From Paramoeba atlantica (lineage: Eukaryota; Protista; Discosea): a DNA stretch of 15,131 nucleotides. The notes beneath the pieces are model-generated. The model did no database searches and was not told where the DNA came from. It saw nothing but the letters and a program-made list of their open reading frames with translations. The position numbers and the translations under genes were made by a program. The stretch spans positions 1 through 15,131 of the forward strand of contig CDRNVI010000129.1 in assembly GCA_977017575.1 (NCBI GenBank). Reading direction: 5' to 3'. Below, one piece after another: positions 1 to 15,131 of this stretch (positions are counted from its first letter, which is position 1; each line of letters begins with the position of its first letter).

Positions 1-372
1 AAACGTTTTGAAATTGATTATAATTTATTAAGTATAGATTATAATTCTAGATTAATTATTTCTGTATCTTGTGATAAATTAGATGTTATAAGATCTATTA
101 CTGATATTTATTTAGGTGCCGATTGGTTAGAACGTGAAGTTTGAGATATGTATGGTATTTTTTTCATGGGTCATAAAGATTTAAGACGTATATTAACCGA
201 TTATGGTTTTGAAGGTTATCCGTTTCGTAAAGATTTTCCTTTAAATGGTTATTTAGAAATAAGGTATGATGAAGATAAACAATATTTGATTTATGAGCCT
301 ATTGAATTAATGCAAAATATGAGATCATATAGTTTTACTAATCCTTTATTAAATAAAAAATATATACTTTAA
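1..372 (+). CDS. nad9: NADH dehydrogenase subunit 9, 5'-partial (starts upstream of the window)
   Basis: Frame 1 is open from base 1 and reads ...ADWLEREV(TGA 142-144=W)[30 protein letters not shown], the Nad9/NuoC signature. TAA at 370-372. Confidence 0.97.
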
Positions 373-376
373 AAAC

Positions 377-1561
377 GTGAATAAAATATTTAAAAAAATA
401 AAAACTTTTACAATTAATTTTGGACCACAGCATCCAGCAGCTCATGGAGTTTTAAGATTAATATTAGAATTAAATGGTGAAATTATAGAAAGAGCTGATC
501 CTCATATAGGATTATTACATAGAGGTACTGAAAAATTAATAGAATATAAGACTTTTATACAAGCTTTACCTTATTTTGATAGATTAGATTATGTATCTAT
601 GATGGCTCAAGAACATTGTTATTCATTAGCTGTAGAAACTTTAAGTTCTACTAATGTACCTATAAGAGCAAAGATGATACGTATGATTTTTGGTGAAATA
701 ACTAGAATATTAAATCATATTTTAGGGTTAACTACACATGCGTTAGATGTTGGAGCGATGACACCTTTTTTATGACTTTTTGAAGAACGTGAAAAATTAA
801 TGGAATTTTACGAAAGGGTATCAGGTGCTAGAATGCATGCAGCATATATAAGACCAGGAGGTATTAGTCAAGATATACCTATGTCTTTTTGTGATGATTT
901 ATATAAATTTACACAAAATTTTATTAACTCTTTAATGGAAATGGAAGAATTATTAAATAGAAATAGAATATGAAAGCAACGTTTAGTTGATGTAGGTATA
1001 TTAGATTATAATCAAGCACAAACTTGAGGTTGTAGTGGAGTTATTTTAAGAGGATCTGGTATTCCTTGAGATATTAGAAAAAGTGAACCTTATGAATTAT
1101 ATAATGAAGTTGATTTTAAATCTTATATAGGAAATAAAGGTGATTGTTTTGATAGATTTTTAATTAGATTAAAAGAAATGCATGAGAGTTTAAAAATAAT
1201 TTTACAACTTTTAAATAATTTAAAAGAAGGTCCTATTTCAAATTACAATAATAAATTAACTATACCTTCAAGATCATTAATGAAGTTTTCTATGGAATCT
1301 TTAATACATCATTTTAAATTATTTACAGAAGGTGTTAATATACCTTTTAATGATGTTTATAGATCTATAGAAGCTCCTAAAGGGGAATTTGGTGTTTTTT
1401 TAGTTTCGGGAGGATTAAATAGACCGGTAAGATGTAAGATAAAAGCACCAGGGTTTAATCATTTACAATTATTAGATACATTATCAAAAGGACATATGAT
1501 AGCCGACGTTGTTACTATTATAGGTACTTTAGATATAGTTTTTGGGGAGGTTGATCGTTAA
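377..1561 (+). CDS. nad7: NADH dehydrogenase subunit 7 (394 aa, probable GTG start)
   Basis: [45 protein letters not shown] and C-terminal DIVFGEVDR are present. One continuous frame when TGA 773, 971, 1025 and others are read as W (TPFLW, NRIWKQR, IPWDIRK). TAA at 1559-1561. Confidence 0.98.
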
Positions 1562-1594
1562 TCAAATATTAATATAATATTAAATATTATATAT

Positions 1595-2050
1595 ATGCAA
1601 AAAAAATTAAATCGATTTTTTAATTTAAGAATTAATTCTAGAGGTGCCGCTTTTGAAAATTTAAATATAGGACCTAATTTAAGTCCTTATATGAATAGAG
1701 AGAAAATCAAAGAATTTTGTAATGAATTTAATAAACAAACTTTTATATATAGATCGGAAGATTTATTAATATATGTTAGATTATTTTTATATACTGATAA
1801 ATCATTTGTTTTTTTAATAAAAGGACCTTCTTTTAGTACTTTATTAAAATTGGTTTGAAATATTATGAGTTTAACTAATAAAAATATTATGGAAAATTCA
1901 ATTACATTAAGAAGTCTATATGATATTGTTATATTGCGTAATTATTATTGATTTAAATTATATAATAATTTAAATCAAAATTGAATAAAATTGCGATTTA
2001 AAAATAGTTTTTTTTCTATATCAAATTTACAAATTAATAAAATTATATAA
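1595..2050 (+). CDS. rpl11: Ribosomal protein L11 (151 aa)
   Basis: IGPNLSPY..N...FCNEFNKQT, and YTDKSFVFLIKGPS matching the L11 Y.D.SF.F..K.PP pattern. Reads through TGA 1856, 1949 and 1982 to TAA 2048-2050. Located upstream of the rps12 cluster. Confidence 0.85.
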
Positions 2051-2056
2051 AAAAAT

Positions 2057-2437
2057 ATGAATAATAATATTATAGCTTTTTTTTATGTAAATCAATATAA
2101 ATCGTTTAATAATTTTGAACAAATTTATTTAAACATAATGAATTTATCTAATATTAATTTATTATATAAAATTTTTGTTAATATTAAATATTTTCTAATT
2201 ATTAATAAGAAATATTTTAAAGATTATTTTACTAATCTTTTAAATAATGATGAATTATTATTTTTATGATATAAAAATAAATTATATAGTAAAGGAACTT
2301 TAGAACAAATAAATAATAGTTTGTTATTAAATTTAAATAAAAAGTATTATTTATTTAATGAATTAATGAAATTCAATTATGAAAAAAAAATTATTAATAC
2401 GTTAATAATATTTAAATATAAATTATGGCTTCGTTAA
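2057..2437 (+). CDS. orf126, unassigned; candidate divergent ribosomal protein L10
   Basis: ATG 2057, open through TGA 2267 (W) to TAA 2435-2437. It exactly fills the rpl11-rps12 gap and overlaps rps12 by 13 nt. The identity rests on synteny and a weak motif only. Confidence 0.6.
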
Positions 2438-2835
2438 ATCAATTAATAAGAAATAAAGGCAGAGTAAAAAAAAAAAGACGTACAAAAGTTCTTTTGTTAG
2501 ATTCTTGTCCACAAAAAAGAGGTGTTTGTATTGAAATTAGAAATAGTGTTAGTCCAAAGAAACCAAATTCCGCTAAAAGAAAAGTAGCAAAAATAAGGTT
2601 ATCAACAGGTAAAAAATTAATAGCAGTTATACCAGGTCAAGGTCATAATTTACAAAAATATTCAGTTGTTATGATTAGAGGAGGACGTGCTAGAGATATT
2701 CCAGGTGTACGTTATAAATTGATAAAAGGAAAATATGATTTTAGTAATTGAGAACGTGAAGAACGAAATAAAAGTCGTTCTAAATATGGTTTGAAAAAAA
2801 AAAAGAAGGAAGGAAAGATTTTAAAAGATGAATAA
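2425..2835 (+). CDS. rps12: Ribosomal protein S12 (136 aa)
   Basis: [45 protein letters not shown], then W (TGA 2749) and [12 protein letters not shown] at 2833-2835. Confidence 0.97.
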
Positions 2836-3247
2836 TTGAATAAAATATTTAATACAATTATTAATAAGAAAAGGAAAAAAACAACGAATTATATTAAGTT
2901 TAGAGAAAATTTTTATTAATATAAAAAAAATATATGGTTGTTTAAATACTTTTTTTAAACAAATAGAAACTAATATATTCATTAGAATGTTTTGTTATAT
3001 TAAAAAAGTAGGAGGTAAAAAATTATTAATACCACATATTTTAAAATCAAAAGATTCTATACCATATTCTGTTAAATTAATAGTTAGATCTATTAATTCT
3101 AGAACTGAGCGAAAATTTCAAGAACGTATTCAAAATGAATTAATAGATGTATATAATAATAAAGGTTTATCTATAAAAAAAAAAAATGATATGTATAGAT
3201 TAATAGAAGCAAATTATACTAATATTAGATTTAAAAGAAAAAAATAA
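2828..3247 (+). CDS. rps7: Ribosomal protein S7 (139 aa)
   Basis: ATG 2828 overlaps the rps12 stop and reads MNNW(TGA)IKYLIQLLIRKGKK. The C-terminus IQNELIDVYNNKGLSIKKKNDMYRLIEAN matches the S7 ELIDA....G.A.KKK...H..AEAN pattern. Follows rps12. Confidence 0.9.
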
Positions 3248-3250
3248 TAT

Positions 3251-3994
3251 ATGTTAAAAAGGAAAAAACAGTCAAAAACAATAAAATATTTAACATTTGG
3301 TTTAAAAAATTATGCAGGAGTTAATAATATGGGTCATAAAACAGTTAAATCAAAGGGAACTAGAGTTAAAAAGAAATATAGATTAATTGATTTTTTTAGA
3401 ACTTACGTTGATATACCTGCAATGGTATTAAGAATTGAGTATGATCCTAATAGATCTGCAAATATAGCTTTAATATGTTATAAAAATGGATTTTTATCTT
3501 ATATTTTAGCAGCCGAAGGTTTGAAAGAAGGTATGGTTTTAAATTCAGTAGATAAAATTGTTGGTTCTACATATCCTTTAGTAAATATAAAATTTGGTTC
3601 TTTTATATCTTGTATGGAATTAAAAAAAAAAAAAGGAAGTAAAGTAGCTAGATCTGCAGGTTCTTTTTGTTTATTAATATCACAAATAAATGAAAATTAT
3701 TATTTAATAAGATTTCCTTCTGGTTTAGAAAAATTAATTTTTAAATATAATAAAGCTATGATAGGTATTGTATCAAATAGAGGGCATAATTTAATAAAAA
3801 AAGGTAAAGCGGGTGTTAATATAAGATTAGGTAAAAAATCAACAGTTAGAGGTGTAGCAAAAAATTGTGTAGATCACCCTAATGGTGGTGGTAGAGGTAA
3901 AACTTCTCCATGAGTCGATTGTCCAAATTTTACAAGACGTGTATTAAAATTTGTACCTACAACTAAGAAAAAAAAAAAAAATGAATTTAAATAA
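3251..3994 (+). CDS. rpl2: Ribosomal protein L2 (247 aa)
   Basis: YRLIDF, IEYDPNRSANIAL, ARSAG, VRGVAKN.VDHPNGGGRGKTSPW (TGA 3911). TAA at 3992-3994. Confidence 0.96.
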
Positions 3995-4259
3995 TATTAA
4001 AAATATTAAAAATATTATTTATTTTTTAAATTTTTCAAAAATAGATAAATTTATTTGATTAAAGTTAAAAGTAAAAGGTTTTAAAATAAAAAATTATATG
4101 ATTAATAAAAGATTAACTGTATATAATGGTCGTTATTTTATTCCAATTAAAATTATAGATAGTATGGTTAATTATATGATTAATTATTTTTTTTTTTCAA
4201 AAAATATATTAATAAAAGATAAAAAGAAAAAGAAACGTATAAAGAAAAAGAAAAAATAA
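3981..4259 (+). CDS. rps19: Ribosomal protein S19 (92 aa; missing from the ORF track)
   Basis: ATG 3981, one TGA (4056). IKNYMINKRLTVYNGRYFIPIKIIDSMVNYMINYF resembles the S19 I.P.M.G.TI.VHNG....V.I...MVGHKLGEF pattern. Canonical position between rpl2 and rps3. TAA at 4257-4259. Confidence 0.85.
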
Positions 4260-4261
4260 TT

Positions 4262-5452
4262 ATGGGACATTTAGTTAATCCAATAACATATAGATTATCA
4301 AAAAGTAAATATTGAATTTCGTCTTGAAATAATATTACAAAAAAAAATTATAAATTATTTTTTTTAGAAGATTATAATATTATTAAATTTTATAATTGAA
4401 TTAAAGTTATAATTAATTGAAACAAGTTAAATTTAGAAATATTACCGTTAAATATAATTAAAACATATAAAATGATGATAATAAATTTAAATTTATTAAA
4501 TGATGATAATAAATTTTTAATTAATGATATTAAGTCAAAAAAATATAAATTAAAAAAATATTATAATCAGTCAAAAAAATATATATTTAAATCTTTTTTA
4601 AAGTATAAACAGTCAAAAAGAAAAAAAAAATATAATTTTTTAAAAGAAAAAAAAAAAAAAAAATATATATTAAATTTTTTACGTAAATTTTTTTATAGTA
4701 AAAGAAAAAATTTTTATAAAAATAAAAAATATGTTTGATTTAATTATTTTTTTTGAGACATGCATAATAATAAATATTATTTATTTTATAATAAGTCTTG
4801 TAGAGGGTTTTATAGAAAGAAAATATTTAAAAATATATGAAAAAAAAAATCAATAAATAATTTTAATAATTTTAAATATTTTTATAAATATAAAAATATT
4901 TATATTTATAAAAATAATAAAAGATTAAACAATTTTATTTTTAAATATAAATGATTTAATTTATTAAGAATTCCAACTAATCGTTGATTAAATAGATTAA
5001 AATATATTAAAAATACTAATTATTTAACTTTAGATAAAAAATTTATTTTTATATTAAAAAATTTTTTATCGTTTTTTATAAAAAAAATTTTTAAAGTTAA
5101 TAATCCTATAATTAATTTTATAGATAAAAAAGAAGTAAATTATTCTACTTATTCTTTATATAAGCTAATTTTATGAAGATTGCGTGTAGGTTATAAAATA
5201 GAGCATTATGCTTATTTATTACATAATAAATTAAAAAATGAAAGAGGTATTATAGGTTTTAAAATAGGTTATGCAGGGAGATATAAAAAAAAGTTAAGAA
5301 ATAAAAAGTTTATTAAACAATTTGGTGCTATTTCACCAAGTAATATAAATTCTCCTTTAAGTTATAATCAGTTTATTTTAATTATGCGGTATGGTGTTTG
5401 TGGTGTAAAAATGAGTTATGTTAGAAAAGTGTATTTATCTTCTATAATATAA
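4262..5452 (+). CDS. rps3: Ribosomal protein S3 with a large low-complexity central expansion (396 aa)
   Basis: N-terminus MGHLVNPITYRLSKSKYW (S3 MGQK.NP..FRL....W). C-terminus GIIGFKIGYAGR...GAISPSNINSPLSY......RYGVCGVKM. Single open frame with about 10 TGA=W codons. TAA at 5450-5452. Confidence 0.9.
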
Positions 5453-5500
5453 AAAGAAAGAAAAGAGAAAAAAAGTTGATTTATTAAGAAATAAATAGAA

Positions 5501-5950
5501 ATGAAAAAAATTTTTGTCAAAAAACATTTAATATTAAATTATTCTAATACTAAAAATTCGATAGAAAAAATATATAATGGTCAATTTGCTATATATTTTT
5601 TAGAAGGTGGTATACTATATAATAATGAATTTAAGGCTTTATTATTTTTTTTAAAAAAAAGATTAAAATTTTTTACTAAATTATTTATACGTTTTCATCC
5701 AAGTTTTAAAAATACATCAAAACCTATAGGTGTTAGAATGGGTAAAGGTAAGGGTGCATTAAATGAATATTATTTTAATATATCAAAAGGTCAAATATTT
5801 ATTGAATTTGGTTTTTCTAATAAATTATTTATATTAAATGATAATGATAAAAAAAAATTATTAGAATATATTAAAGGAATTGTTAAATTAGCCTCATTAA
5901 AATCAAATATTAAATTTAAATTAGTTTATAATAAAGAAAAATGATTTTAG
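5501..5950 (+). CDS. rpl16: Ribosomal protein L16 (149 aa if TGA 5942 is W; TAG stop at 5948-5950)
   Basis: FIRFHP....TSKPIGVRMGKGKG signature. Canonical position after rps3. Confidence 0.93.
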
Positions 5951-6297
5951 TAGGTAGTTATTTAAATTGTAGTGATAATTCTGGTGCACGTATTGTAAAA
6001 TGTATAAGAATTTATAAAAGAAAAAAATATGGATCTATTGGTGATGAAATATTAATAACTGTTAAAACAAATAATCCTAAAAAAAGAATAAAAAAAGGAG
6101 AATTATATAAGGCTTTAATTATTAGAACTAAATATAATTTAAAAAAAAATATAAATTATTATAAATTTAGTGATAATGCTGTTGTTTTGATAAATAAAAA
6201 AAAATTACCTTTAGGTACAAAATTATTTGGTATTAGTTTAAAATTTTTAAGATTTATAAACCGTAAAGTTTTCTTATTGATGCAAAGTATAATATAA
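5941..6297 (+). CDS. rpl14: Ribosomal protein L14 (118 aa)
   Basis: MILVGSYLNCSDNSGARIVKCI, IGD.I.ITVK, KALIIRTK, FSDNAVVLIN, PLGTKLFG. Confidence 0.96.
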   Translation: MILVGSYLNCSDNSGARIVKCIRIYKRKKYGSIGDEILITVKTNNPKKRIKKGELYKALIIRTKYNLKKNINYYKFSDNAVVLINKKKLPLGTKLFGISLKFLRFINRKVFLLMQSII

Positions 6298-6301
6298 AAA
6301 T

Positions 6302-6859
6302 ATGAAAAGTATAGATTTCAAAAGTAATTTAAATATAATACAAAAGGATAACATTAGTAAATTGAATATAATGAGTTTTAATCAATTATCAAAAATTGAT
6401 AAAGTTGATGTAAAAGTTAAATTATATTCTTCAGATGGTAATATAGTTAGAAGGTATCTTATTTTAAATAAATTATTTAAAAAATTATTTAATCAAAGAG
6501 TTTCTATTATAAAAATACAAAAAGAGACATTACGTAATTTTTCTGTTAGATCAAGACGTAATAATTTATCTTATTATATAGTTTTAGGATTAAGTTTAAG
6601 AAAAAATAATATTTATTCTAATTTAAATTATTTATATAATATTATTTTTAATTTATTAGATAAAAATAATGAAAGTAGTTTAATTTATAGAAAAGAAAAT
6701 AAATATATAATAGAATTAAAAAATTTTAATTTTTTATTAGGATTAAATAGTGATGAAGATATATTGGTAAATAATTTAATTTTTAAATTAAATTTTATTA
6801 TAAATTTTAATAATAATAATAATAAATTACATGAAAAAATATTTTTTAAAAAATTATAA
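6302..6859 (+). CDS. rpl5: Ribosomal protein L5, divergent (185 aa)
   Basis: Lies between rpl14 and rps14. LSKIDKVDV resembles L5 P(K)IEKI.(L/V)N, and LGLSLRKNNIYSNLNYL resembles ..VTLR...MY.FL..L. Confidence 0.75.
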   Translation: MKSIDFKSNLNIIQKDNISKLNIMSFNQLSKIDKVDVKVKLYSSDGNIVRRYLILNKLFKKLFNQRVSIIKIQKETLRNFSVRSRRNNLSYYIVLGLSLRKNNIYSNLNYLYNIIFNLLDKNNESSLIYRKENKYIIELKNFNFLLGLNSDEDILVNNLIFKLNFIINFNNNNNKLHEKIFFKKL

Positions 6860-7100
6860 AAATGAAAGAATATATAATAATAATAATACATTAGTATTAT
6901 TATTAAAAATTTTAAAAATATATAGGAAAAAGAAAATATTTTTTTTGAATTTTCCTATACAGAATATTTTAAGAAAGAATTTTTGTATAGAAACTGGTTT
7001 AAAGAGATCTGTTTTTCGAGATTTTTCTTTATCTAGAATGAATATAAAAGAATCTCTTAATATGAAACAAATTAATGGTTTAAAAAAAATATCTTGATAA
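6831..7100 (+). CDS. rps14: Ribosomal protein S14 (89 aa)
   Basis: RKNFCIETGLKRSVFRDFSLSRMNIKE matches S14 NRC..TGR.R...R.FGLSR. It ends GLKKISW with the terminal Trp encoded by TGA 7095-7097, followed by TAA. Overlaps rpl5 by 29 nt. Confidence 0.9.
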
Positions 7101-7103
7101 GTT

Positions 7104-7496
7104 ATGAATTTTTTTTGTAGTCAAATTAATAATGGGTATATAGCTAATTTAAAAAGTTTATATATACCATTAAAAAAAAAGTATTTACCTATATTATCAC
7201 GTTTATACGAATTAAATTTGATAAATAGTTTTATAATATGTAATAAATACCAAATAAAAATAACATTAAAATATTATAATAATAAGCCTTTAATTTTTTT
7301 AGAACAATTATCTTCAGGAGGTAATAAACAATATTTAAAATTTAAAACTTTTAATAAAAATTTTTCTAAATTTTATTTTAATCCTTGTTTTTATAGTAGT
7401 AATAAAGGTTTGTTAACACACGATGAAGCTTATATTATAAAAAGTGGTGGTAAAGCCTTATTAAAAGTACATCTATTATATAAAAATATATTATAA
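7104..7496 (+). CDS. rps8: Ribosomal protein S8 (130 aa)
   Basis: FCSQINNGY, LKYYNNKP, SSNKGLLTHDEAYIIKSGGK matching S8 STSKG.MT..EA....GGE. Positioned after rps14. Confidence 0.88.
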   Translation: MNFFCSQINNGYIANLKSLYIPLKKKYLPILSRLYELNLINSFIICNKYQIKITLKYYNNKPLIFLEQLSSGGNKQYLKFKTFNKNFSKFYFNPCFYSSNKGLLTHDEAYIIKSGGKALLKVHLLYKNIL

Positions 7497-7499
7497 TAA

Positions 7500-8039
7500 A
7501 TGAAAAAAAAATTATATTTAGGAAAAAGTTCTTTATTAAATATTATACATAATAATAATAATATTTTTATGGAAAATATAATAAGTAATTATAAAAAAAA
7601 TATAGATTTAACTATCTTAACTTTATTTAATCAAAAAAATATATTTATATTAAATAATAAAACATTAATTATTAAAAGAAAGAAATATTATAGTTTATTT
7701 CAAAGATATATAAAAAAAAATTTAATTGATTTGATAAGAGGTTATTGCCTAATTTTAAATGTTATAGGTTTAGGTTTTACTATGACTATTTGAAAAGATA
7801 ATGAATTAAGATTTAATATAGGTTATAATCATTTGATTTATTATAATATACCTAAAGGTATTTTAGTTAAATCTAGATCTAGAAGAAATCTTTTTTTATT
7901 TAGTAATTCTTATTTTTTGTTAAAAAAAGTATCTGTGGAAATAAAACAATTTAGAAAATTAAATGCATATAAATTGAAAGGAATAAAAGAAAAAAATGAA
8001 TTATATATTAAAAAAAATTGAAAAAAAGGAACTTATTAA
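7500..8039 (+). CDS. rpl6: Ribosomal protein L6, full two-domain length (179 aa)
   Basis: RGY...LNVIGLGF, W (TGA 7791), LRFNIGYNH, EIKQFRKLNAYKLKGI (L6 .IR..R.P..YKGKGI). TGA 8019 read as W, TAA at 8037-8039. Confidence 0.9.
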
Positions 8040-8184
8040 TTCAGCAATAAGTTTTAAGGTATTATTAAATTATAATTATAATTTAATTTATATACATAAT
8101 TATAATTTAAAATTAATTTTCGATAATAATTGACTTCAAGTTAAAAATTATTTATATGAAATGGGTATTATAAATAAACAATAA
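7996..8184 (+). CDS. orf62, unassigned small ORF between rpl6 and rps13
   Basis: ATG 7996 gives MNYILKKIEKKELINSAISFKVLLNYNYNLIYIHNYNLKLIFDNNW(TGA)LQVKNYLYEMGIINKQ, TAA 8182-8184, ending 5 nt before the rps13 ATG. No recognised motif. Confidence 0.45.
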
Positions 8185-8189
8185 AAAAT

Positions 8190-8504
8190 ATGAATATAAA
8201 ACGTTATATAATTAATAATTATAATATTGGTTTATCTTTATTATCTATAATATTATTTAAATTTGGTTTATTATATAATAAATCTTATAAAAATATTAAT
8301 AATAAAGGTTTATTAAAACAGTTAGAAAAAAATTTGTTATATTTTTTTAAAAGGAAGGAACAAATTAAACATATTAGATATAATAATATTATGAAAAAAA
8401 TAGTTAATGGTTCTTATTTTGGTTATAAACGTATTAGAGGGTTACCTATGTATAATCAACGATCAAAGACTAATAATAGATCATCGAGAAAAAAAATAAT
8501 ATAA
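8190..8504 (+). CDS. rps13: Ribosomal protein S13 (104 aa)
   Basis: GSYFGYKRIRGLPMYNQRSKTNNRSSRK matches S13 G.YRG.RH..GLPVRGQRTKTNAR. Confidence 0.92.
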   Translation: MNIKRYIINNYNIGLSLLSIILFKFGLLYNKSYKNINNKGLLKQLEKNLLYFFKRKEQIKHIRYNNIMKKIVNGSYFGYKRIRGLPMYNQRSKTNNRSSRKKII

Positions 8505-8507
8505 GTG

Positions 8508-11500
8508 ATGAAAACTACATGATATAATAATATAATAAAACATAATATAAAAAATAATAAAATAGTTTTATTTGATAATAAAACAGATTATAATGAGTTA
8601 TCTTTATATAATTTAAATTATAAGAGTAAAAATTTTTTATTATTAAATAATGTTATTGATGTTATTAGTGATAATATTTATTCAGAAATAAAAAATTTCA
8701 ATCTTAATTTAATAATAAATATTTATTATTTAATGAATAAATTTTTTAAATTTAATATTAATAAAAAATTTTATAAATTAGAGTATTTAAATAATAAATA
8801 TTTATTATTGAATTTAAATAATTCTAAATCGTTTTTTGTTATAAAAGATAATTATAAAAATTTTTATAATAATTTTTTTCAAAATTCTTTTATGAATTTT
8901 TTAGATTGTAATAAAAAATTTATATATAATAGAAAGTTAAGGTATAAAAATTATAATTTTTTATTATCATATAAAAATAAATTAAGAAAAAAATTGTTTT
9001 TAAAGCAAACTCGTTTTAATAATATAGATAATGAAGATTTTTTAAATTTTGGACCAGAAAATGGTTTATATTTTCAAACTATAAGTAATAGTTTTAGAAA
9101 GAAAAGAGAAGAAAAGAGAAGAAGAAAACAACAATTATTTCATTATAATAATAATATAATAAAAAAAACTATTTTTTTAAAAAAAGGTCAAGTATTTTTA
9201 GGTTATAATTTTAAGTCTTTATCAAAATTAAATTTATTTAATTTAGATTATATAAAATTTAATAATAATTTTTATATAAGAAAAAAATATTGTCTTGAAA
9301 AGAATAAAAAAAATTTATTTTTATTATTTAGAAAAGAAAATTTATTAAAATATTATAATAAAAAATATTTAAAATATAAAAAATTTAATATAAAAAATTT
9401 TTATAATAATTATTATTTTTTATTTAAAAAATTATTGTATAAAAAAAATAAAAATAAATTATATAGAAAGAGAAAAATTTTAATTAAAAAAAAATTTAAA
9501 AATAAATTATATAATTATAATTTATTTTTAAATAAACTAAATTTATTTAAAAATAAAAAAGAAAAGAGAAATTTATTTAATATTAGATATAATTTTTTTT
9601 ATAAAATATATAATATTAATTTATGAAAAAAATATAAAAGAAAAGAGAAATTTTTAGATTATATAAAAAGAATAAAAAATAACTTTTATTCTTTAAAATT
9701 ATATAAAAGAAAAGAAAAAAGAATAAAATTATATAATTATTCATATTTAATTAAAAGAAAAAAATTATTAAATTATAATTTTTTATATTTTATAAAAAAT
9801 TTATATATTAATAGTATTTATAATAATATTAAAAATAAATTTTTATATAAAAATTATAAAAAATTTTATATAATGAATAAATTTTTATATACTATTAATT
9901 CGAATATTGATTATAAAATATTAAAAATATTTTTAATAATATTAAATAATATTAAATTATTAAATAATTATAAAATTTCTAAAAATGTTAAAAATTTCTT
10001 TTTTAAGAATAGTTTTAATAACATATTAAAAAAAAGAAATTGAAAACAAATAAATAAATATTTATATTTTCGTATTTTTAATAAATATAATTATAATAAA
10101 ATTAATAATTATAAATATAAAAAGAAAAAAATTAAAAAATTTATAAATATAAAAAGAAAAAATTCAAAATTTTTTATTATTAAAAAATCAACAACAAAAG
10201 AAAAAAAAATATATAAATTTGATAAATTTTTTTATAATATTTCTTTAAATTTAATTAAATTAAATAAATTACATAAAAAAAAGGGAATAAAGAAAAAAAA
10301 TTATTTTAATAATAATAAAAATATGAAATCTTTAATAAATTATTATATTTACAATTATAATAATAAAGATTTATTGAATTTTAATATTTATAATTATAAT
10401 TGTAAATATAATAAATTTAATAAAGATTATTGTTCTCATAAATATAAAAATTTTAAAGTTTATAAATATAAAAATTTTATATTTAATAGTTATGAATTAG
10501 ATTATTACAATATAATAAATAAATTTCATAAAAAAAAATGAAATTTTTATATTATAAATGAAAAAGAAAAGAATGATTTATATTATAAATGAAAATCTAT
10601 AAAGATACCTTATAATAATTTTTTAGTATTTTCTTGTAATATTAATTGTGAAAATTATTTAATAAAAGTTTTAACTAAGATTAAAAAGAATTATATTTTT
10701 TATTCAAAAAATTTATTAAATAATAATTCAATTATATCTAAAAGAAAAGAGAATAAAAGTTTAAAAAAGAGAAATTTTATATCTTATAATTGTAATTTAA
10801 TTGATAATTTAAAATTAAATAAAAGAAAAGAGAAAAATTTAAAATCTTGAACTTATTATTTATTTATAAATAATAATTTAATAAAAGAAAAGAGAAAAAT
10901 AATTTTAAAACCAATAAAAGAAAAAAAAAATATTAAAAACTCAATTTGTTTATGAAAAAAAAGAAATTGATTTATAAATAAATCTTTTACTCAGAAGAGT
11001 TCATATTTAAAATTTTATAATAGAAAGAAGAAAGTATTTATATTAATTCAAAAAAATAATTTAAAGAAAAGAGAAAAAAAATTATTAAATTTATATTTAA
11101 CAGGAAAAAAGAGAAGATTCTATAGGTATAATAATATTACATCTTTTTTTTTAAATTATAAGTTTATTAATAATAATAAAACATTATTATTTAAACAAAT
11201 GAAAAAAAAATTAAAAATTTTATTTAAAAAAGGTTTATTTAAAAAAAGTAGTATGTATTTTTTTAGAAGAACATTATTAGTAGAATATCCTAAATGATCA
11301 TTAATAAAAGAAAATTATTTTAAACGTAATGAAGATAATATAATGTCGTATTTATCAAAATATATACATTTTAAAATTTATAATATATATAGAAAAATAT
11401 ATAATATTGATTTATTATTTTTAAAACGAATTAATCAATATAAAAATTTTAGTAAACTAAATTATTCAAAAATTTTAATTAATATTAGAAGTAATTTGTT

Positions 11501-11987
11501 ACAATATTTTTATAACAAAAATAAGACTTTCAAAAGTTTTATTAAAAATAAAGTTTACTATAATAAATTTTTAGTAAAAAATGTATCAATAAAAAATTAT
11601 ATATTATTTAATAATATTAATGATTATACTAATAATTATAAAAATATAAATAATTTGAAATATAATAATTCTATATATAGTTATTATAAATATTTTTTAA
11701 AATTAGTATTATTTAATAATTTGATTTTAAAAAATAATTATACTAAAAAAATAAATTGTGATATTAGTTTATTTATTACTAAATTTATGAAAAATTTAAA
11801 TATAATATATAAGTATATATATAGTATTAAGTATTCAAATAAAAAAAATTTAAATTATTATTCAAAATTAAATGAAATAAATTTTTTTAATAATATTTAT
11901 GACTATGATTATAGTTTATTAAATAATAATAGCTTAATAAATTATAAATTAAATACTGTTACTTTATTAAATTCTAAAAAATATTAA
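8508..11987 (+). CDS. orf1159, giant K/N/Y/F/I/L-rich orphan ORF
   Basis: ATG 8508, 3 nt after the rps13 stop. No TAA or TAG in frame until 11985-11987. Nine in-frame TGA (8520, 9624, 10041, 10539, 10590, 10848, 10953, 10968, 11295) join the ORF-track pieces 8733-9626, 10323-10541 and 11343-11987, which all share one frame. Confidence 0.85.
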
Positions 11988-12225
11988 TTAAATAATATTT
12001 AATTAATAAATTTAAAAAGAAATTTTTAAATTTGAATATTATTATTAATTTGAATAATAATAATATTTTTAAAATAAGGTAAAAAGAAAAAAATATTTTT
12101 ATCTTATATATGTTTGCACCTTCAAGATGTTGTATAGAAAAAGAAAGAAAAGAATAAACGTGAAAAAATGATTAAGAAAATTATTTAGTAATTAAATTAT
12201 AGTAATAAAAAAAAAAATTATTATT

Positions 12226-12606
12226 ATGCCACAATTAGATTTAGGAATTTTATTTTTAGAATTAGTTTTAAATTTTATATTTTTTTGATTAATTTATATT
12301 TATTATGCAAGATATATATTCCCTTTAATAAATAAAACTATTAAATTAAGAAAATATAAATTAAAATCTATAATAAAAAGATTATTATTATTAGAATCAA
12401 ATATTTTATTTATTATAAAATTAAATTTAAGTATTTTATTAAATAATAATTTTTTATTAAATAAATTTGTTGTTTTATTAAAATCTAAAATTAATAATAT
12501 TAAAATTATTATTTTTAGTAAATTATATATATTAGGTTTAAATTTCTTAAAAAAAGAATCTTTATTAAATAAAAAATATTTTATAATAAAAACAATATAT
12601 AAATAA
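12226..12606 (+). CDS. atp8: ATP synthase subunit 8 (orfB/ymf19 type, 126 aa; missing from the ORF track)
   Basis: N-terminal MPQLD signature, then hydrophobic LGILFLELVLNFIFFW(TGA 12286)LIYIYY, then IFPLINKTIKLRK. TAA 12604-12606 overlaps the cob ATG (TAATG). Confidence 0.9.
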
Positions 12607-13388
12607 TGAGATTAGTTAAAAAAGATATTTTTGTAAATGCATTTTATAATGCTTTAGTAGTTTATCCAGCTCCTGCTAATATAACTTATGCTTGAAATTT
12701 AGGAGTTAGTGCTGGTTTGTTTTTAATTATTCAGATTTTAACAGGTGTTATTTTAGCTATGTATTATACACCTAATGCTGATTTAGCTTTTGCTAGTGTT
12801 AGACATATAGTTAATGATGTACATTTTGGTGATATGCTAAGAATGTACCATGCTAGTGGATCATCAGTTTTTTTTTTTGTAATATATTTACATGTATTTA
12901 GAGGTTTATATTATGGTTCATATACTTATCCTAGACAATTTGTATGAGTATCTGGTGTTATAATATTATTAATTATGATTATAACAGCTTTTGTAGGTTA
13001 TGTTTTACCTTGGGGTCAAATGAGTTTTTGAGCAGCAACTGTTATTACTAATTTAGTGTCAGTTATACCTTTTGTAGGTAATGATATATTATTATGATTA
13101 TGAGGTGGATTTTCTGTTGATGAAGCTACATTACATCGTTTTTTTAGTTTACATTATTTATTACCTTTTGTTATAGCAGCTTTAGCTGGAGTTCATATTA
13201 TATTATTACATGAAGTTGGTTCTAATAATATATTAGGTATTAATCATAAGGTAGATCAAATACCATTTCATCCTTATTTTGTTTTTAAAGATTTATTTAG
13301 TTCATTATTATTATTATTTGGTTTTAATATGTATGCTATAAAACATACTCCAAGTATAATAGACGCAGATAATTTTATTCCAACATAA
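12606..13388 (+). CDS. cob: Apocytochrome b, 3'-truncated (homology ends at about 13382, codon 259; TAA follows at 13386)
   Basis: [12 protein letters not shown], all four heme His ligands (MYHASG, YLHVFRG, SLHYLL, VHIILLH), [23 protein letters not shown] and DNFIP are present. The PEWY motif and helices F-H are absent. Confidence 0.95.
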
Positions 13389-13475
13389 ATTTGTTGGAAA
13401 AGTAACAGTAAAAAGTTGTTAATGAAAAAAAATAAATTCATTAACAACAACGTTGATGAAAAATATCAATCAACG
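13378..13475. repeat. Three consecutive perfect inverted repeats (hairpins) at the cob breakpoint
   Basis: TTCCAACA/TGTTGGAA (13378-85/13392-99), GTTGTTAATGAA/TTCATTAACAAC (13415-26/13437-48) and CGTTGAT/ATCAACG (13451-57/13469-75). Confidence 0.9.
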
Positions 13476-15131
13476 CTGTTAAATTTCCAACAAAATAATG
13501 TCAGAAAAAAATTTCTGCCGAAATAATTTAGCTGATTAAATTTTTATCACGACAAAAATATTTTTTTGTGGATCAATTAAATCGTTATTAACAAAAAAGT
13601 TATAACGCTGTTAATTTTCCAACCTAAAAATTTTTTATCTCTCAAAAAATATTTTTTGATGTTCAAAGTTATCGTTTGATAACAAAAAAGTTATAACGCT
13701 GTAACTTTTCCAACAAAAAAAATTTTTTTTCGTGTTAAAAATTATTTTTGATCAATAAAAATTATTTTCGATGTTCAAATTCATCGTTTGATAACAAAAA
13801 AGTTATAACGCTGTTAATTTTCCATCAAAAATTATTTTTTTTTGCTTCAAAAATTTTTTTTAACATAAAAATTTATAATGATGATTACAAAATAAGTGTT
13901 GCAACTCAAAAAAGTTGTTTAACACTGTTAATTTTCCATCAACATCATAATTTTTATTTAAAAATTTTAATCAAGATCAATTTTATAAACATTTTTTGTA
14001 AAAAAATTAAAATTTTTACTGGAAAATTACGGTGAGATGCATAAAAATTAGATTTAAACATAAATTTATGCAAACTACCGTTTAATTTCCAACAAAATTT
14101 AAATTTTTTTCATTCAAAAATAGATTTTTTTAATTTTTCGCCGACAAAATTGAAAAAAAATTGAATTTTCATTCAAAAAGTTGTAAAATTGAGTCTCAGG
14201 ATGAAAAAGTGGAAAAAGACCACATTTTATCAATTCGACGCTAAATTAGCAAAAAATTTCAATTTCTACACCTAAATGACTGTAGAAATTGGTGTTTTCC
14301 TACAATTTTGTGGAAATCCCTGACAAACACTGCTAAATTTCCAACAAAAAGTCAATTTGCAGGTGCTGCCCGTGGATTTTCCAACAAAATACTAGCAAAA
14401 CTACTCAAAATGCTATTTTTCCGGCAGAAAACCGTCAAAATCTGCTTTTTCTGGGCAGGAATGACAAAAACGGCCCAAAAAAGGCCCTGTCATTTTGCCC
14501 AAAAACGCAGTATTTTTTCCTGTTCTGGCCTGCAAATTAGCGGATGTCCAAAGCCCCCAAAAAAAGTGACTTGGACTCCGAGCCGACTCGAAAAGTCGTA
14601 TTTTCCGGCAGAAACGAAAAAATATGCCACATTTTGTCCGACGATTATTTACAACTTTTTCTCGCATCCCATCATGGCGATTTTGCGGATCTGCAGGTTG
14701 GGAGGGAGCCAACTGCATTTTTTGGCCGTTTTGAACCCGTTTTGTAAAAAATCGCATATATAAACTCCATAATTTCCCCTCAGAAATCTGCCACTTTTGG
14801 AGGCCAAAAAGTGTTTTGCAGAATCTCGAGGGCAAAATAGGAGTTTTTTGACCCGATTTTGTGAACAAAACTGGCATCAAAAACTATTCCAAATGCTCCA
14901 ATCCGAATTTCAGCTATTGAACACTAAAAATGCTGAAAATCGCTATTTCGCACTGGAATTCCGCCAAAACTCCTTTTCAATGCGTATTTTGGGCGAGAAA
15001 ACCGTCGATTTTATAATTTTTAAACTTTTTTTTGTATAATTTATCATTTTTAGCGCGGATTTCTATAATTTCTCGCATAATTTATTAGTTTTATAGCGTT
15101 GTAGTTAAAATTTTCATAATTTTATCATCAA
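13383..15131. other. Non-mitochondrial-like, non-coding DNA (nuclear-type repeat and periodic A/T-tract sequence)
   Basis: The codon-like structure of the upstream genes is lost. GC and CG dinucleotides rise visibly, especially at 14300-14950. A4-6/T4-6 tracts occur about every 10 bp, and no recognisable protein motifs are present. Confidence 0.75.
13471..13940 (+). repeat. Degenerate tandem repeat of ~90-130 bp units, core (ATCGTTTGAT)AACAAAAAAGTTATAACGCTGTTAATTTTCCAWC
   Basis: The anchor AACRCTG occurs at 13472, 13604, 13695, 13807 and 13921. The near-identical ~43-nt core is at 13581-13623, 13671-13714 and 13783-13826. Decayed TTTCCAACAAAA cores recur near 14086, 14338 and 14378. Confidence 0.85.

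Follow-up and report, generated by a model that had tools for sequence, protein, structure and literature searches.

A giant open reading frame behind rps13 in the mitochondrial genome of Paramoeba atlantica is kept open by selection and may encode a mitoribosome-associated protein

Introduction

Giant open reading frames (ORFs) that escape assignment by sequence are known from the mitochondrial DNA (mtDNA) of dictyostelids and ciliates. Here we describe a frame of this kind, ORF1159, located in a stretch of 15,131 nucleotides (nt) from the discosean amoeba Paramoeba atlantica (GenBank assembly GCA_977017575.1, contig CDRNVI010000129.1, positions 1 to 15,131 of the forward strand; hereafter the window, whose numbering is used unless another contig is named). 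ORF1159 is an unannotated, giant, fast-evolving mitochondrial ORF, and an earlier reading based on the letters of the window (the sequence-only reading) had singled it out as an orphan frame directly behind rps13.

In dictyostelid mitogenomes, rps13 is followed by rps11.1 (363 nt) and rps11.2 (4311 nt; Cavenderia pseudoaureostipes), and rps3 is giant and split (PMC13583974). ORF1159 occupies the same place in the cluster, directly downstream of rps13/rps11, and shares with rps11.2 the giant size and the setting in AT-rich mtDNA; both mostly lack a recognisable domain and are variably present or detectable among relatives (PMC13583974). They differ in that rps11 of the present genome is complete (193 amino acids, aa) and lies far away, and nothing ties ORF1159 to S11. 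We consider rps11.2 an analogue of ORF1159 in position and phenomenology. The giant dictyostelid ORFs named rps3.2 and rps11.2 are the ones that we take to be comparable cases, and orf796, reportedly described by Iwamoto et al. in 1998, is said to be the counterpart in Dictyostelium discoideum. A phmmer search with residues 6-372 of ORF1159 returned no dictyostelid protein at E ≤ 0.001, the search with the C-terminal part being word-limited.

For Tetrahymena, 22 mtDNA-encoded Ymf ORFs of unknown function were described, in a genome whose 43 proteins reach 1344 aa; nine of these ORFs were placed in the mitoribosome by cryo-electron microscopy and reannotated as mitoribosomal (PMC7326499). Like ORF1159, they are long, fast-evolving, soluble, mtDNA-encoded and resistant to annotation by sequence. 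However, they belong to a different supergroup and have no sequence relation to ORF1159, and their role was shown experimentally, whereas ORF1159 is known from its sequence. In Acanthamoeba castellanii, proteomics and complexome profiling revealed divergent mtDNA-encoded ribosomal proteins, such as orf99, a homologue of MRPL19 (PMC4500093, PMC13632651). These ORFs also belong to amoebozoan mtDNA and were missed by standard annotation, but they are small and have a detectable remote homologue, whereas ORF1159 is ten times longer and no such homologue was found for it. Finally, uS4 and uS11 share with ORF1159 the position behind rps13, as in the ancestral alpha operon, and a basic composition; in this genome, however, both are encoded elsewhere and neither shows significant similarity to ORF1159.

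Results and Discussion

A single frame of 1159 codons

ORF1159: 8508..11987, + strand; ATG at 8508, TAA at 11985-11987, 1159 sense codons under genetic code 4.

As the sequence-only reading had described, the 3,480 nt form one frame without internal TAA or TAG in DNA of about 90% A+T. The G+C content of the stretch is 9.1%, and each of its five other frames contains between 74 and 233 TAA or TAG codons. When translated with table 11, the frame is interrupted at codons 5, 373, 512, 678, 695, 781, 816, 821 and 930. Because all nine of these internal stops are TGA and TGG is absent from the frame, TGA is read as tryptophan (code 4); the sole TAA or TAG is the terminal TAA. The G+C content at third codon positions (GC3) and the codon-position pattern agree with those of the other mitochondrial genes of the same genome, about 9% of which (of about 39 kb) is taken up by ORF1159.

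The predicted product has a mass of about 145 kDa. Lysine (233 residues), asparagine (210), leucine (134), tyrosine (126), isoleucine (116) and phenylalanine (102) make up about 80% of it, while glycine and proline occur seven and four times. Its net charge is +223 (K+R 0.23, D+E 0.04), and no transmembrane segment was predicted, the best 19-residue Kyte-Doolittle mean being 1.33. These values bear out the basic, glycine- and proline-poor composition and the lack of a long transmembrane stretch that had been noticed by eye.

The uninterrupted frame is present on three independent contigs of the species. The full 1159-aa product is found in public ENA assemblies (P0001) with one residue changed, and over 13.3 kb just one base separates the window from two ENA contigs, L002 and L003 (one of which is 39,429 nt long and flagged as circular); this base accounts for the change (N668D). 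The sequencing runs containing this stretch come from five studies, none of them recorded as RNA.

Selection on the frame

A related contig (L001, ENA ERZ25074695, 13.8% G+C) carries a homologue that is collinear with ORF1159 along its whole length and was split by the gene caller into two proteins, P0002 (306 aa, 58% identical) and P0004 (911 aa). We applied the observed substitution spectrum to the window ORF in a neutral simulation of 500 runs. On average, 40 stops accumulated per lineage and 71 over the full divergence, and the frame stayed open in 0 of the 500 runs. In contrast, no stop was actually seen in either lineage, including the entire linker of 650 codons that separates the better conserved parts of the protein. 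In addition, 24 of the 29 alignment gaps between the two sequences are multiples of three, and tryptophan encoded by TGA is the best-conserved residue type, with seven of nine positions kept in L001. That ORF1159 is a real gene, and that selection keeps it open, we regard as practically certain. A frame held open against a mutational pressure that should soon destroy it must do something important.

Constraint along the protein and growth of the linker

The distribution of constraint was evaluated with the ratio of the proportions of nonsynonymous and synonymous differences (pN/pS; Nei-Gojobori counting, code 4, against L001), a measure that is biased by A+T pressure but comparable across genes. 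This comparison with a relative, which the sequence-only reading had proposed, separates the following segments.

N-terminal part: 8508..8678, + strand; 57 codons, 53% identity; the start MK(TT)WYNNIIK is common to the relative and the remainder is weakly conserved.
N core: 8679..9128, + strand; codons 58-207, 71% identity, pN/pS 0.70 (0.40 around the island).
Island (FGPENGLY): 9009-9080, + strand; residues 168-191, within the N core, conserved in the relative.
Linker: 9129..11084, + strand; codons 208-859, low-complexity K/N/Y/L, 50% identity, pN/pS 0.99, no stops.
C core: 11085..11537, + strand; codons 860-1010, 77% identity, pN/pS 0.38 (bootstrap 0.22-0.61), the most constrained segment.
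C tail: 11538..11984, + strand; codons 1011-1159, 66% identity, pN/pS 0.70.

The value for the whole ORF was 0.84, compared with 0.07-0.24 for rpl16, rpl14, rps14, rps8, rpl6, rps13, the atp8-like gene and cob, and 0.65 for rpl5. The island had been taken as the best candidate for a conserved core; it is indeed conserved in the relative and lies within the N core, but the C core (860-1010) is more constrained. The C tail holds the invariant NYYSKLNEIN...NNIYDYDYSLLNNN, and a small conserved patch was observed in the linker near codons 412-470. The simplest reading of this pattern is a pair of functional modules, with a linker between them that is required to be open only so that the C-terminal module gets made. 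The linker, of about 650 residues, evolves neutrally in sequence while its frame stays open, which makes ORF1159 a clean natural example of selection on the integrity of a frame, and not on its sequence, across 650 codons.

Eight exact copies of the 13-mer AAAGAAAAGAGAA are present in the mitochondrial genome, all of them on the + strand, against about 0.4 expected by chance. Seven of the copies are inside ORF1159, starting at 9098 (9098..9110), 9558, 9637, 10741, 10822, 10884 and 11063, six of them in the linker; they occupy all three codon phases and encode runs of K, E and R. The eighth copy lies at 5457-5469 in the rps3/rpl16 spacer, 44 nt upstream of rpl16. The 13-mer may have arisen by slippage, may be a small element that spreads, or may serve as a signal in RNA. 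Likewise, 13 of the 25 G-containing purine runs of the genome fall in ORF1159. Purine-only tracts are frame-safe building material, because neither TAA nor TAG can arise from purines in any phase.

The relative contains an in-frame tandem duplication of 348 nt (116 codons; L001:6065-6793; 2.1 copies, 95% identical) with no counterpart in the window; it may reflect true expansion or an error of assembly.

As these repeats show in part, the length of the linker changes through in-frame tandem duplication and through purine-only (GAAAA-like) tracts, and ORF1159 illustrates how both let a protein grow in DNA of 90% A+T.

Homology and structure searches

The protein searches spanned 1.84 billion representatives, and the later homology queries were residues 1-319 and 351-1159, or the window from 9556 onward. 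An exhaustive phmmer search with residues 6-372 (E ≤ 0.001) retrieved the ORF1159 product itself, the relative P0002 and one spurious coiled-coil repeat protein (P0003), and no homologue outside the Paramoeba-type group. The word-index protein search gave no match for the C-terminal 229 aa and, for residues 830-1159, the product itself and its relative alone. No relatives were found in two Joint Genome Institute (JGI) metagenome scans and one viral-contig scan, and the ESM Atlas yielded no usable match. When six TGA-free pieces and long parts were compared with Pfam and NCBIfam, no match to S4, polymerase, reverse transcriptase or endonuclease families was obtained at E ≤ 10, the weak matches being DUF6509 and MuF_C alone, far below the cut-offs. 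PDB sequence searches with pieces and two-sequence profiles gave chance matches alone.

We also compared the frame with a reference set of proteins encoded in the S10, spc and alpha operons of Escherichia coli K-12, using Smith-Waterman Z-scores and hhalign. Among the positive controls from the genome itself, rps4, rps13, rpl6, rps8, rps14, rpl14, rpl16, rps19 and rpl2 reached Z 10-58 (rps4, 13.7), while rps11 (4.4), rps3 (3.4) and rpl5 (0.7) were weak; in hhalign, rps4 reached 85%, rps13 69% and the true rps11 1.1%, whereas no pairing with ORF1159 exceeded 0.8%. The highest Z for any ORF1159 segment in this set was 4.1, against S8, one among about 150 comparisons, and the cores showed no similarity to S4, S11, RpoA, L17 or 22 other E. 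coli ribosomal-cluster proteins. Pfam, NCBIfam, hhalign and Smith-Waterman comparisons agree with the sequence-only reading in detecting no S11, S4, RpoA, endonuclease, reverse transcriptase or polymerase domain, and no full-length match to a known gene, which would remove the novelty of the frame, appeared in Pfam, NCBIfam, PDB or the protein and metagenome searches. These negatives are weak for the present genome, because Pfam also misses its own rps11, rps13, rps3, rpl5 and rpl6, and phmmer does not connect its rps11 to the uS11 chains in PDB.

AlphaFold2 models built from two-row alignments had a predicted local distance difference test score (pLDDT) of 36 for the C-terminal 340 aa and 38.5 for the N core; they are unusable, and with such scores a fold search is meaningless. 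When all other mitochondrial proteins were scanned for paralogy, low-complexity matches alone were obtained, to an asparagine-rich insert of nad11.

The nad11 gene (L003:19870-21900) contains 16% asparagine and, among these low-complexity matches, scored highest with ORF1159 in Smith-Waterman comparison (Z 4.6-4.8), which suggests that this conserved respiratory gene may carry an A+T-driven insert.

A candidate component of the mitoribosome

The explanation that we favour, supported by composition and by the precedents described above, and that has in our estimate about an even chance of being right, takes the ORF1159 product to be a basic protein that binds RNA and associates with the mitoribosome, its two modules being connected by a neutral linker able to expand. 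The mitochondrial gene of this Paramoeba-type amoeba stands in a single-strand array, right behind the ribosomal-protein cluster. It would give rise to a soluble, very basic protein of about 145 kDa, with constrained modules at about residues 58-207 and 860-1159, and the whole frame would stay open because a linker with a stop or a shifted frame would leave the protein without its constrained C-terminal module. The protein would bind mitochondrial RNA and would most likely be a lineage-specific or unrecognisably diverged component of the mitoribosome, or an assembly partner. Its contents of K+R and D+E agree with those of the ribosomal proteins of the same genome (0.15-0.30) and not with those of the respiratory proteins (0.03-0.14). 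The absence of a predicted transmembrane segment and the place of the gene next to the ribosomal-protein cluster likewise fit a ribosomal character. Should the product prove mitoribosomal, Discosea would join ciliates and dictyostelids as a group in which giant, unassignable mtDNA ORFs are parts of the ribosome.

A bolder version of this idea, which we put forward tentatively, is that ORF1159 founds a new family confined to Paramoeba-type amoebae, a 145-kDa RNA-binding scaffold with two novel domains and a self-expanding linker that would act in the mitoribosome or assume a function of reduced ribosomal RNA (rRNA). Outside dictyostelids, no larger ribosome component encoded in mtDNA would then be known from Amoebozoa. 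The sequence-only reading had already put forward an RNA-replacing scaffold or a novel nucleic-acid-binding protein as possible identities.

Several observations weigh against a mitoribosomal role. ORF1159 has no sequence similarity to any ribosomal or RNA-binding family in the Pfam, NCBIfam, PDB, Smith-Waterman and hhalign searches, and both AlphaFold2 models, at the scores given above, provide no usable fold. The overall pN/pS of 0.84 is high for a structural ribosomal protein. A lysine-rich, basic make-up is expected of any unconstrained soluble ORF at 9% G+C and is weak evidence, and all genes lie on one strand, so the adjacency to rps13 says little. Moreover, some ciliate Ymf ORFs reportedly proved to be subunits of respiratory complexes and belong to a respiratory supercomplex (PMC10060162).

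Alternative explanations

These respiratory Ymf proteins also lend weight to a second explanation, namely that this basic mitochondrial protein works outside the ribosome, for example in the packaging of mtDNA in nucleoids, in RNA processing or as a peripheral respiratory subunit. Its composition and charge suit DNA binding equally well, and ribosomal-protein homology was not found with Smith-Waterman or hhalign. However, no transmembrane segment was predicted, and the soluble mtDNA ORFs of Amoebozoa and ciliates that have been resolved are mostly mitoribosomal. We also know of no precedent for a nucleoid protein encoded in mtDNA, which counts against this explanation, and we consider a non-ribosomal role unlikely, if well worth bearing in mind.

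The presence of two constrained modules set apart by a neutrally evolving segment could also mean that two or more once-separate genes, containing the N core and the C core, are read through a translated former spacer, or that they still make two proteins. The frame change of the relative near codon 297, with its two gene calls P0002 and P0004, fits this idea. Nevertheless, the change coincides exactly with a run of 20 A (L001:5079-5098) in a contig labelled 2x, which is the signature of a homopolymer error. By the point where frame 0 of L001 closes, frame 2 has already been open for 20 codons, and its homology to the window frame goes on directly past the run. Because the frame change falls on this run in a 2x contig, the open frames overlap and the homology continues beyond it, a homopolymer length error would be the likeliest cause of the split, true slippage at the run being possible. 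The unbroken frame on the three contigs of the window species also speaks against two genes, and the lack of stops over the 650-codon linker in both lineages argues for its translation. We hold an origin from, or a division into, separate genes to be distinctly unlikely.

A selfish element could also be the source, ORF1159 being a gene from it that has been domesticated or is decaying, for instance one for a reverse transcriptase, an endonuclease or a DNA or RNA polymerase of the plasmid type. In favour of this, plasmid dpo and rpo genes typically have this size (about 1100 aa), the overall pN/pS of 0.84 is high, and the gene was found in two lineages alone across the databases searched. On the other hand, no polymerase, reverse transcriptase or endonuclease family matched in Pfam or NCBIfam at E ≤ 10, acidic residues are few, and no catalytic motif is conserved in the two-species alignment. 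The codon-position composition is native, the gene keeps its syntenic place in both lineages and no notable repeats flank it, and decay would have brought about 40 stops. This origin seems to us very unlikely.

The fourth alternative concerns the genes that would be expected behind rps13.

rps13: 8190..8504, + strand; 104 codons, Smith-Waterman Z 10.9 and hhalign 69% against E. coli S13.
rps4: L010:2340-3053; 237 aa, Pfam S4 match, carries ESRLDVLVYRL...ARQWI.
rps11: L003:354-935; 193 aa, KNTYLNFSHINGN ... AHNGIRKKKRRRK, both S11 signatures by eye.

The TAA of rps13 (8502-8504) is followed by a 3-nt spacer, GTG, and by the ATG of ORF1159 at 8508, as the sequence-only reading had stated. ORF1159 could be rps4 or rps11 in hyper-extended form, or the two fused, in the place that these genes have in the ancestral alpha operon. 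Apart from this position, residues at about 850-900 recall by eye the EKQK and RLD motifs of S4, the island and the run RKKREEKRRR recall the C-terminus PHNGCR..KRR of S11, and the dictyostelid giant ORF in this place is annotated as rps11.2. Gene content and statistics led us to reject these S4-like and S11-like motifs. A canonical rps4, identified by its Pfam match and the scores given above, exists separately, and so does an rps11 similar in length to Rps11 of Acanthamoeba (173 aa). In hhalign, the C core reached 0.1% against S4, which was not among the top Smith-Waterman matches either, and the N core reached 0.8% against S11, in an 8-column match on the basic tail alone; the power of the S11 comparison is low, since the true rps11 itself reaches no more than 1.1% and Z 4.4. 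Smith-Waterman comparisons of the cores with S4 and S11 gave Z ≤ 2.5 (below 1.1 with E. coli S11 and 1.7 with the rps11 of the same genome), and in the paralogy scan rps4 of this genome was not among the top matches. Because separate rps4 and rps11 genes exist and both types of comparison were negative, we reject the extended form, which we consider highly improbable, and state with strong confidence that ORF1159 is not rps4 or rps11.

ORF1159 is also not the rps2 of this genome, for which an rps2-like orf201 on the same circular contig is the probable gene. Since all 16 ribosomal-protein genes usual for Amoebozoa are accounted for without it, ORF1159 is an additional gene. The suggestion that it stands for missing alpha-operon proteins is contradicted by the separate rps4, rps11 and probable rps2 and by cores that lack similarity to S4 and S11; in annotation, the frame should not be labelled rps4 or rps11.

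That ORF1159 is not a gene, but an open frame due to chance or composition, is favoured by the extreme base composition alone and has next to no probability in view of the simulations, none of which stayed open, the conserved tryptophan codons and the in-frame indels.

Genomic context

The order of genes in the window is nad9-nad7-rpl11-orf-rps12-rps7-rpl2-rps19-rps3-rpl16-rpl14-rpl5-rps14-rps8-rpl6-rps13-ORF1159-atp8-like-cob, which is the amoebozoan order. ORF1159 is separated by a spacer of 238 nt from the gene that follows it.

atp8-like gene: 12226..12606, + strand; 126 codons, start MPQLD, followed by cob.

Rfam gave no match on 9556-12700, and terminator-like sites were also not found there. 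By walking, 97% of the circular mitochondrial contig (39.4 kb) was recovered. The window matches this contig up to 13374, inside cob, and from 13375 it continues into unrelated DNA of 20-41% G+C; the window contig looks like a chimeric join at 13374/13375. The ENA contig has an intact cob of 382 aa.

Between the rpl6 and rps13 regions, bacteria carry rpl18 and rps5. In the window, an ORF of 62 codons (7833-8021; L003:9489-9677) overlaps rpl6 at its end and takes up the interval ahead of rps13; no similarity to the E. coli ribosomal-cluster proteins was found for it. ARAGORN detected zero transfer RNA (tRNA) genes in the 15-kb window (1-15131); clusters of them lie in other parts of the genome, close to the rRNA region and upstream of rps11. 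The latter gene is sited upstream of nad9 and not after rps13, with an unassigned orf107 behind it (L003:354-1262, equal to L010:15597-16505), and two tRNA-like genes were recognised by eye ahead of it, in the first 350 nt of L003.

The cox genes are separate and arranged in the order cox2-cox3-cox1 (L010:4674-8235), whereas cox1/2 are fused in Acanthamoeba and dictyostelids. Compared with the 39.4 kb of the present genome, the mtDNA of P. pemaquidensis measures 48.5 kb, with 22% G+C, which marks the two as separate species, although its cob/orf171/nad3 region is echoed here by the arrangement cob-orf167-nad3.

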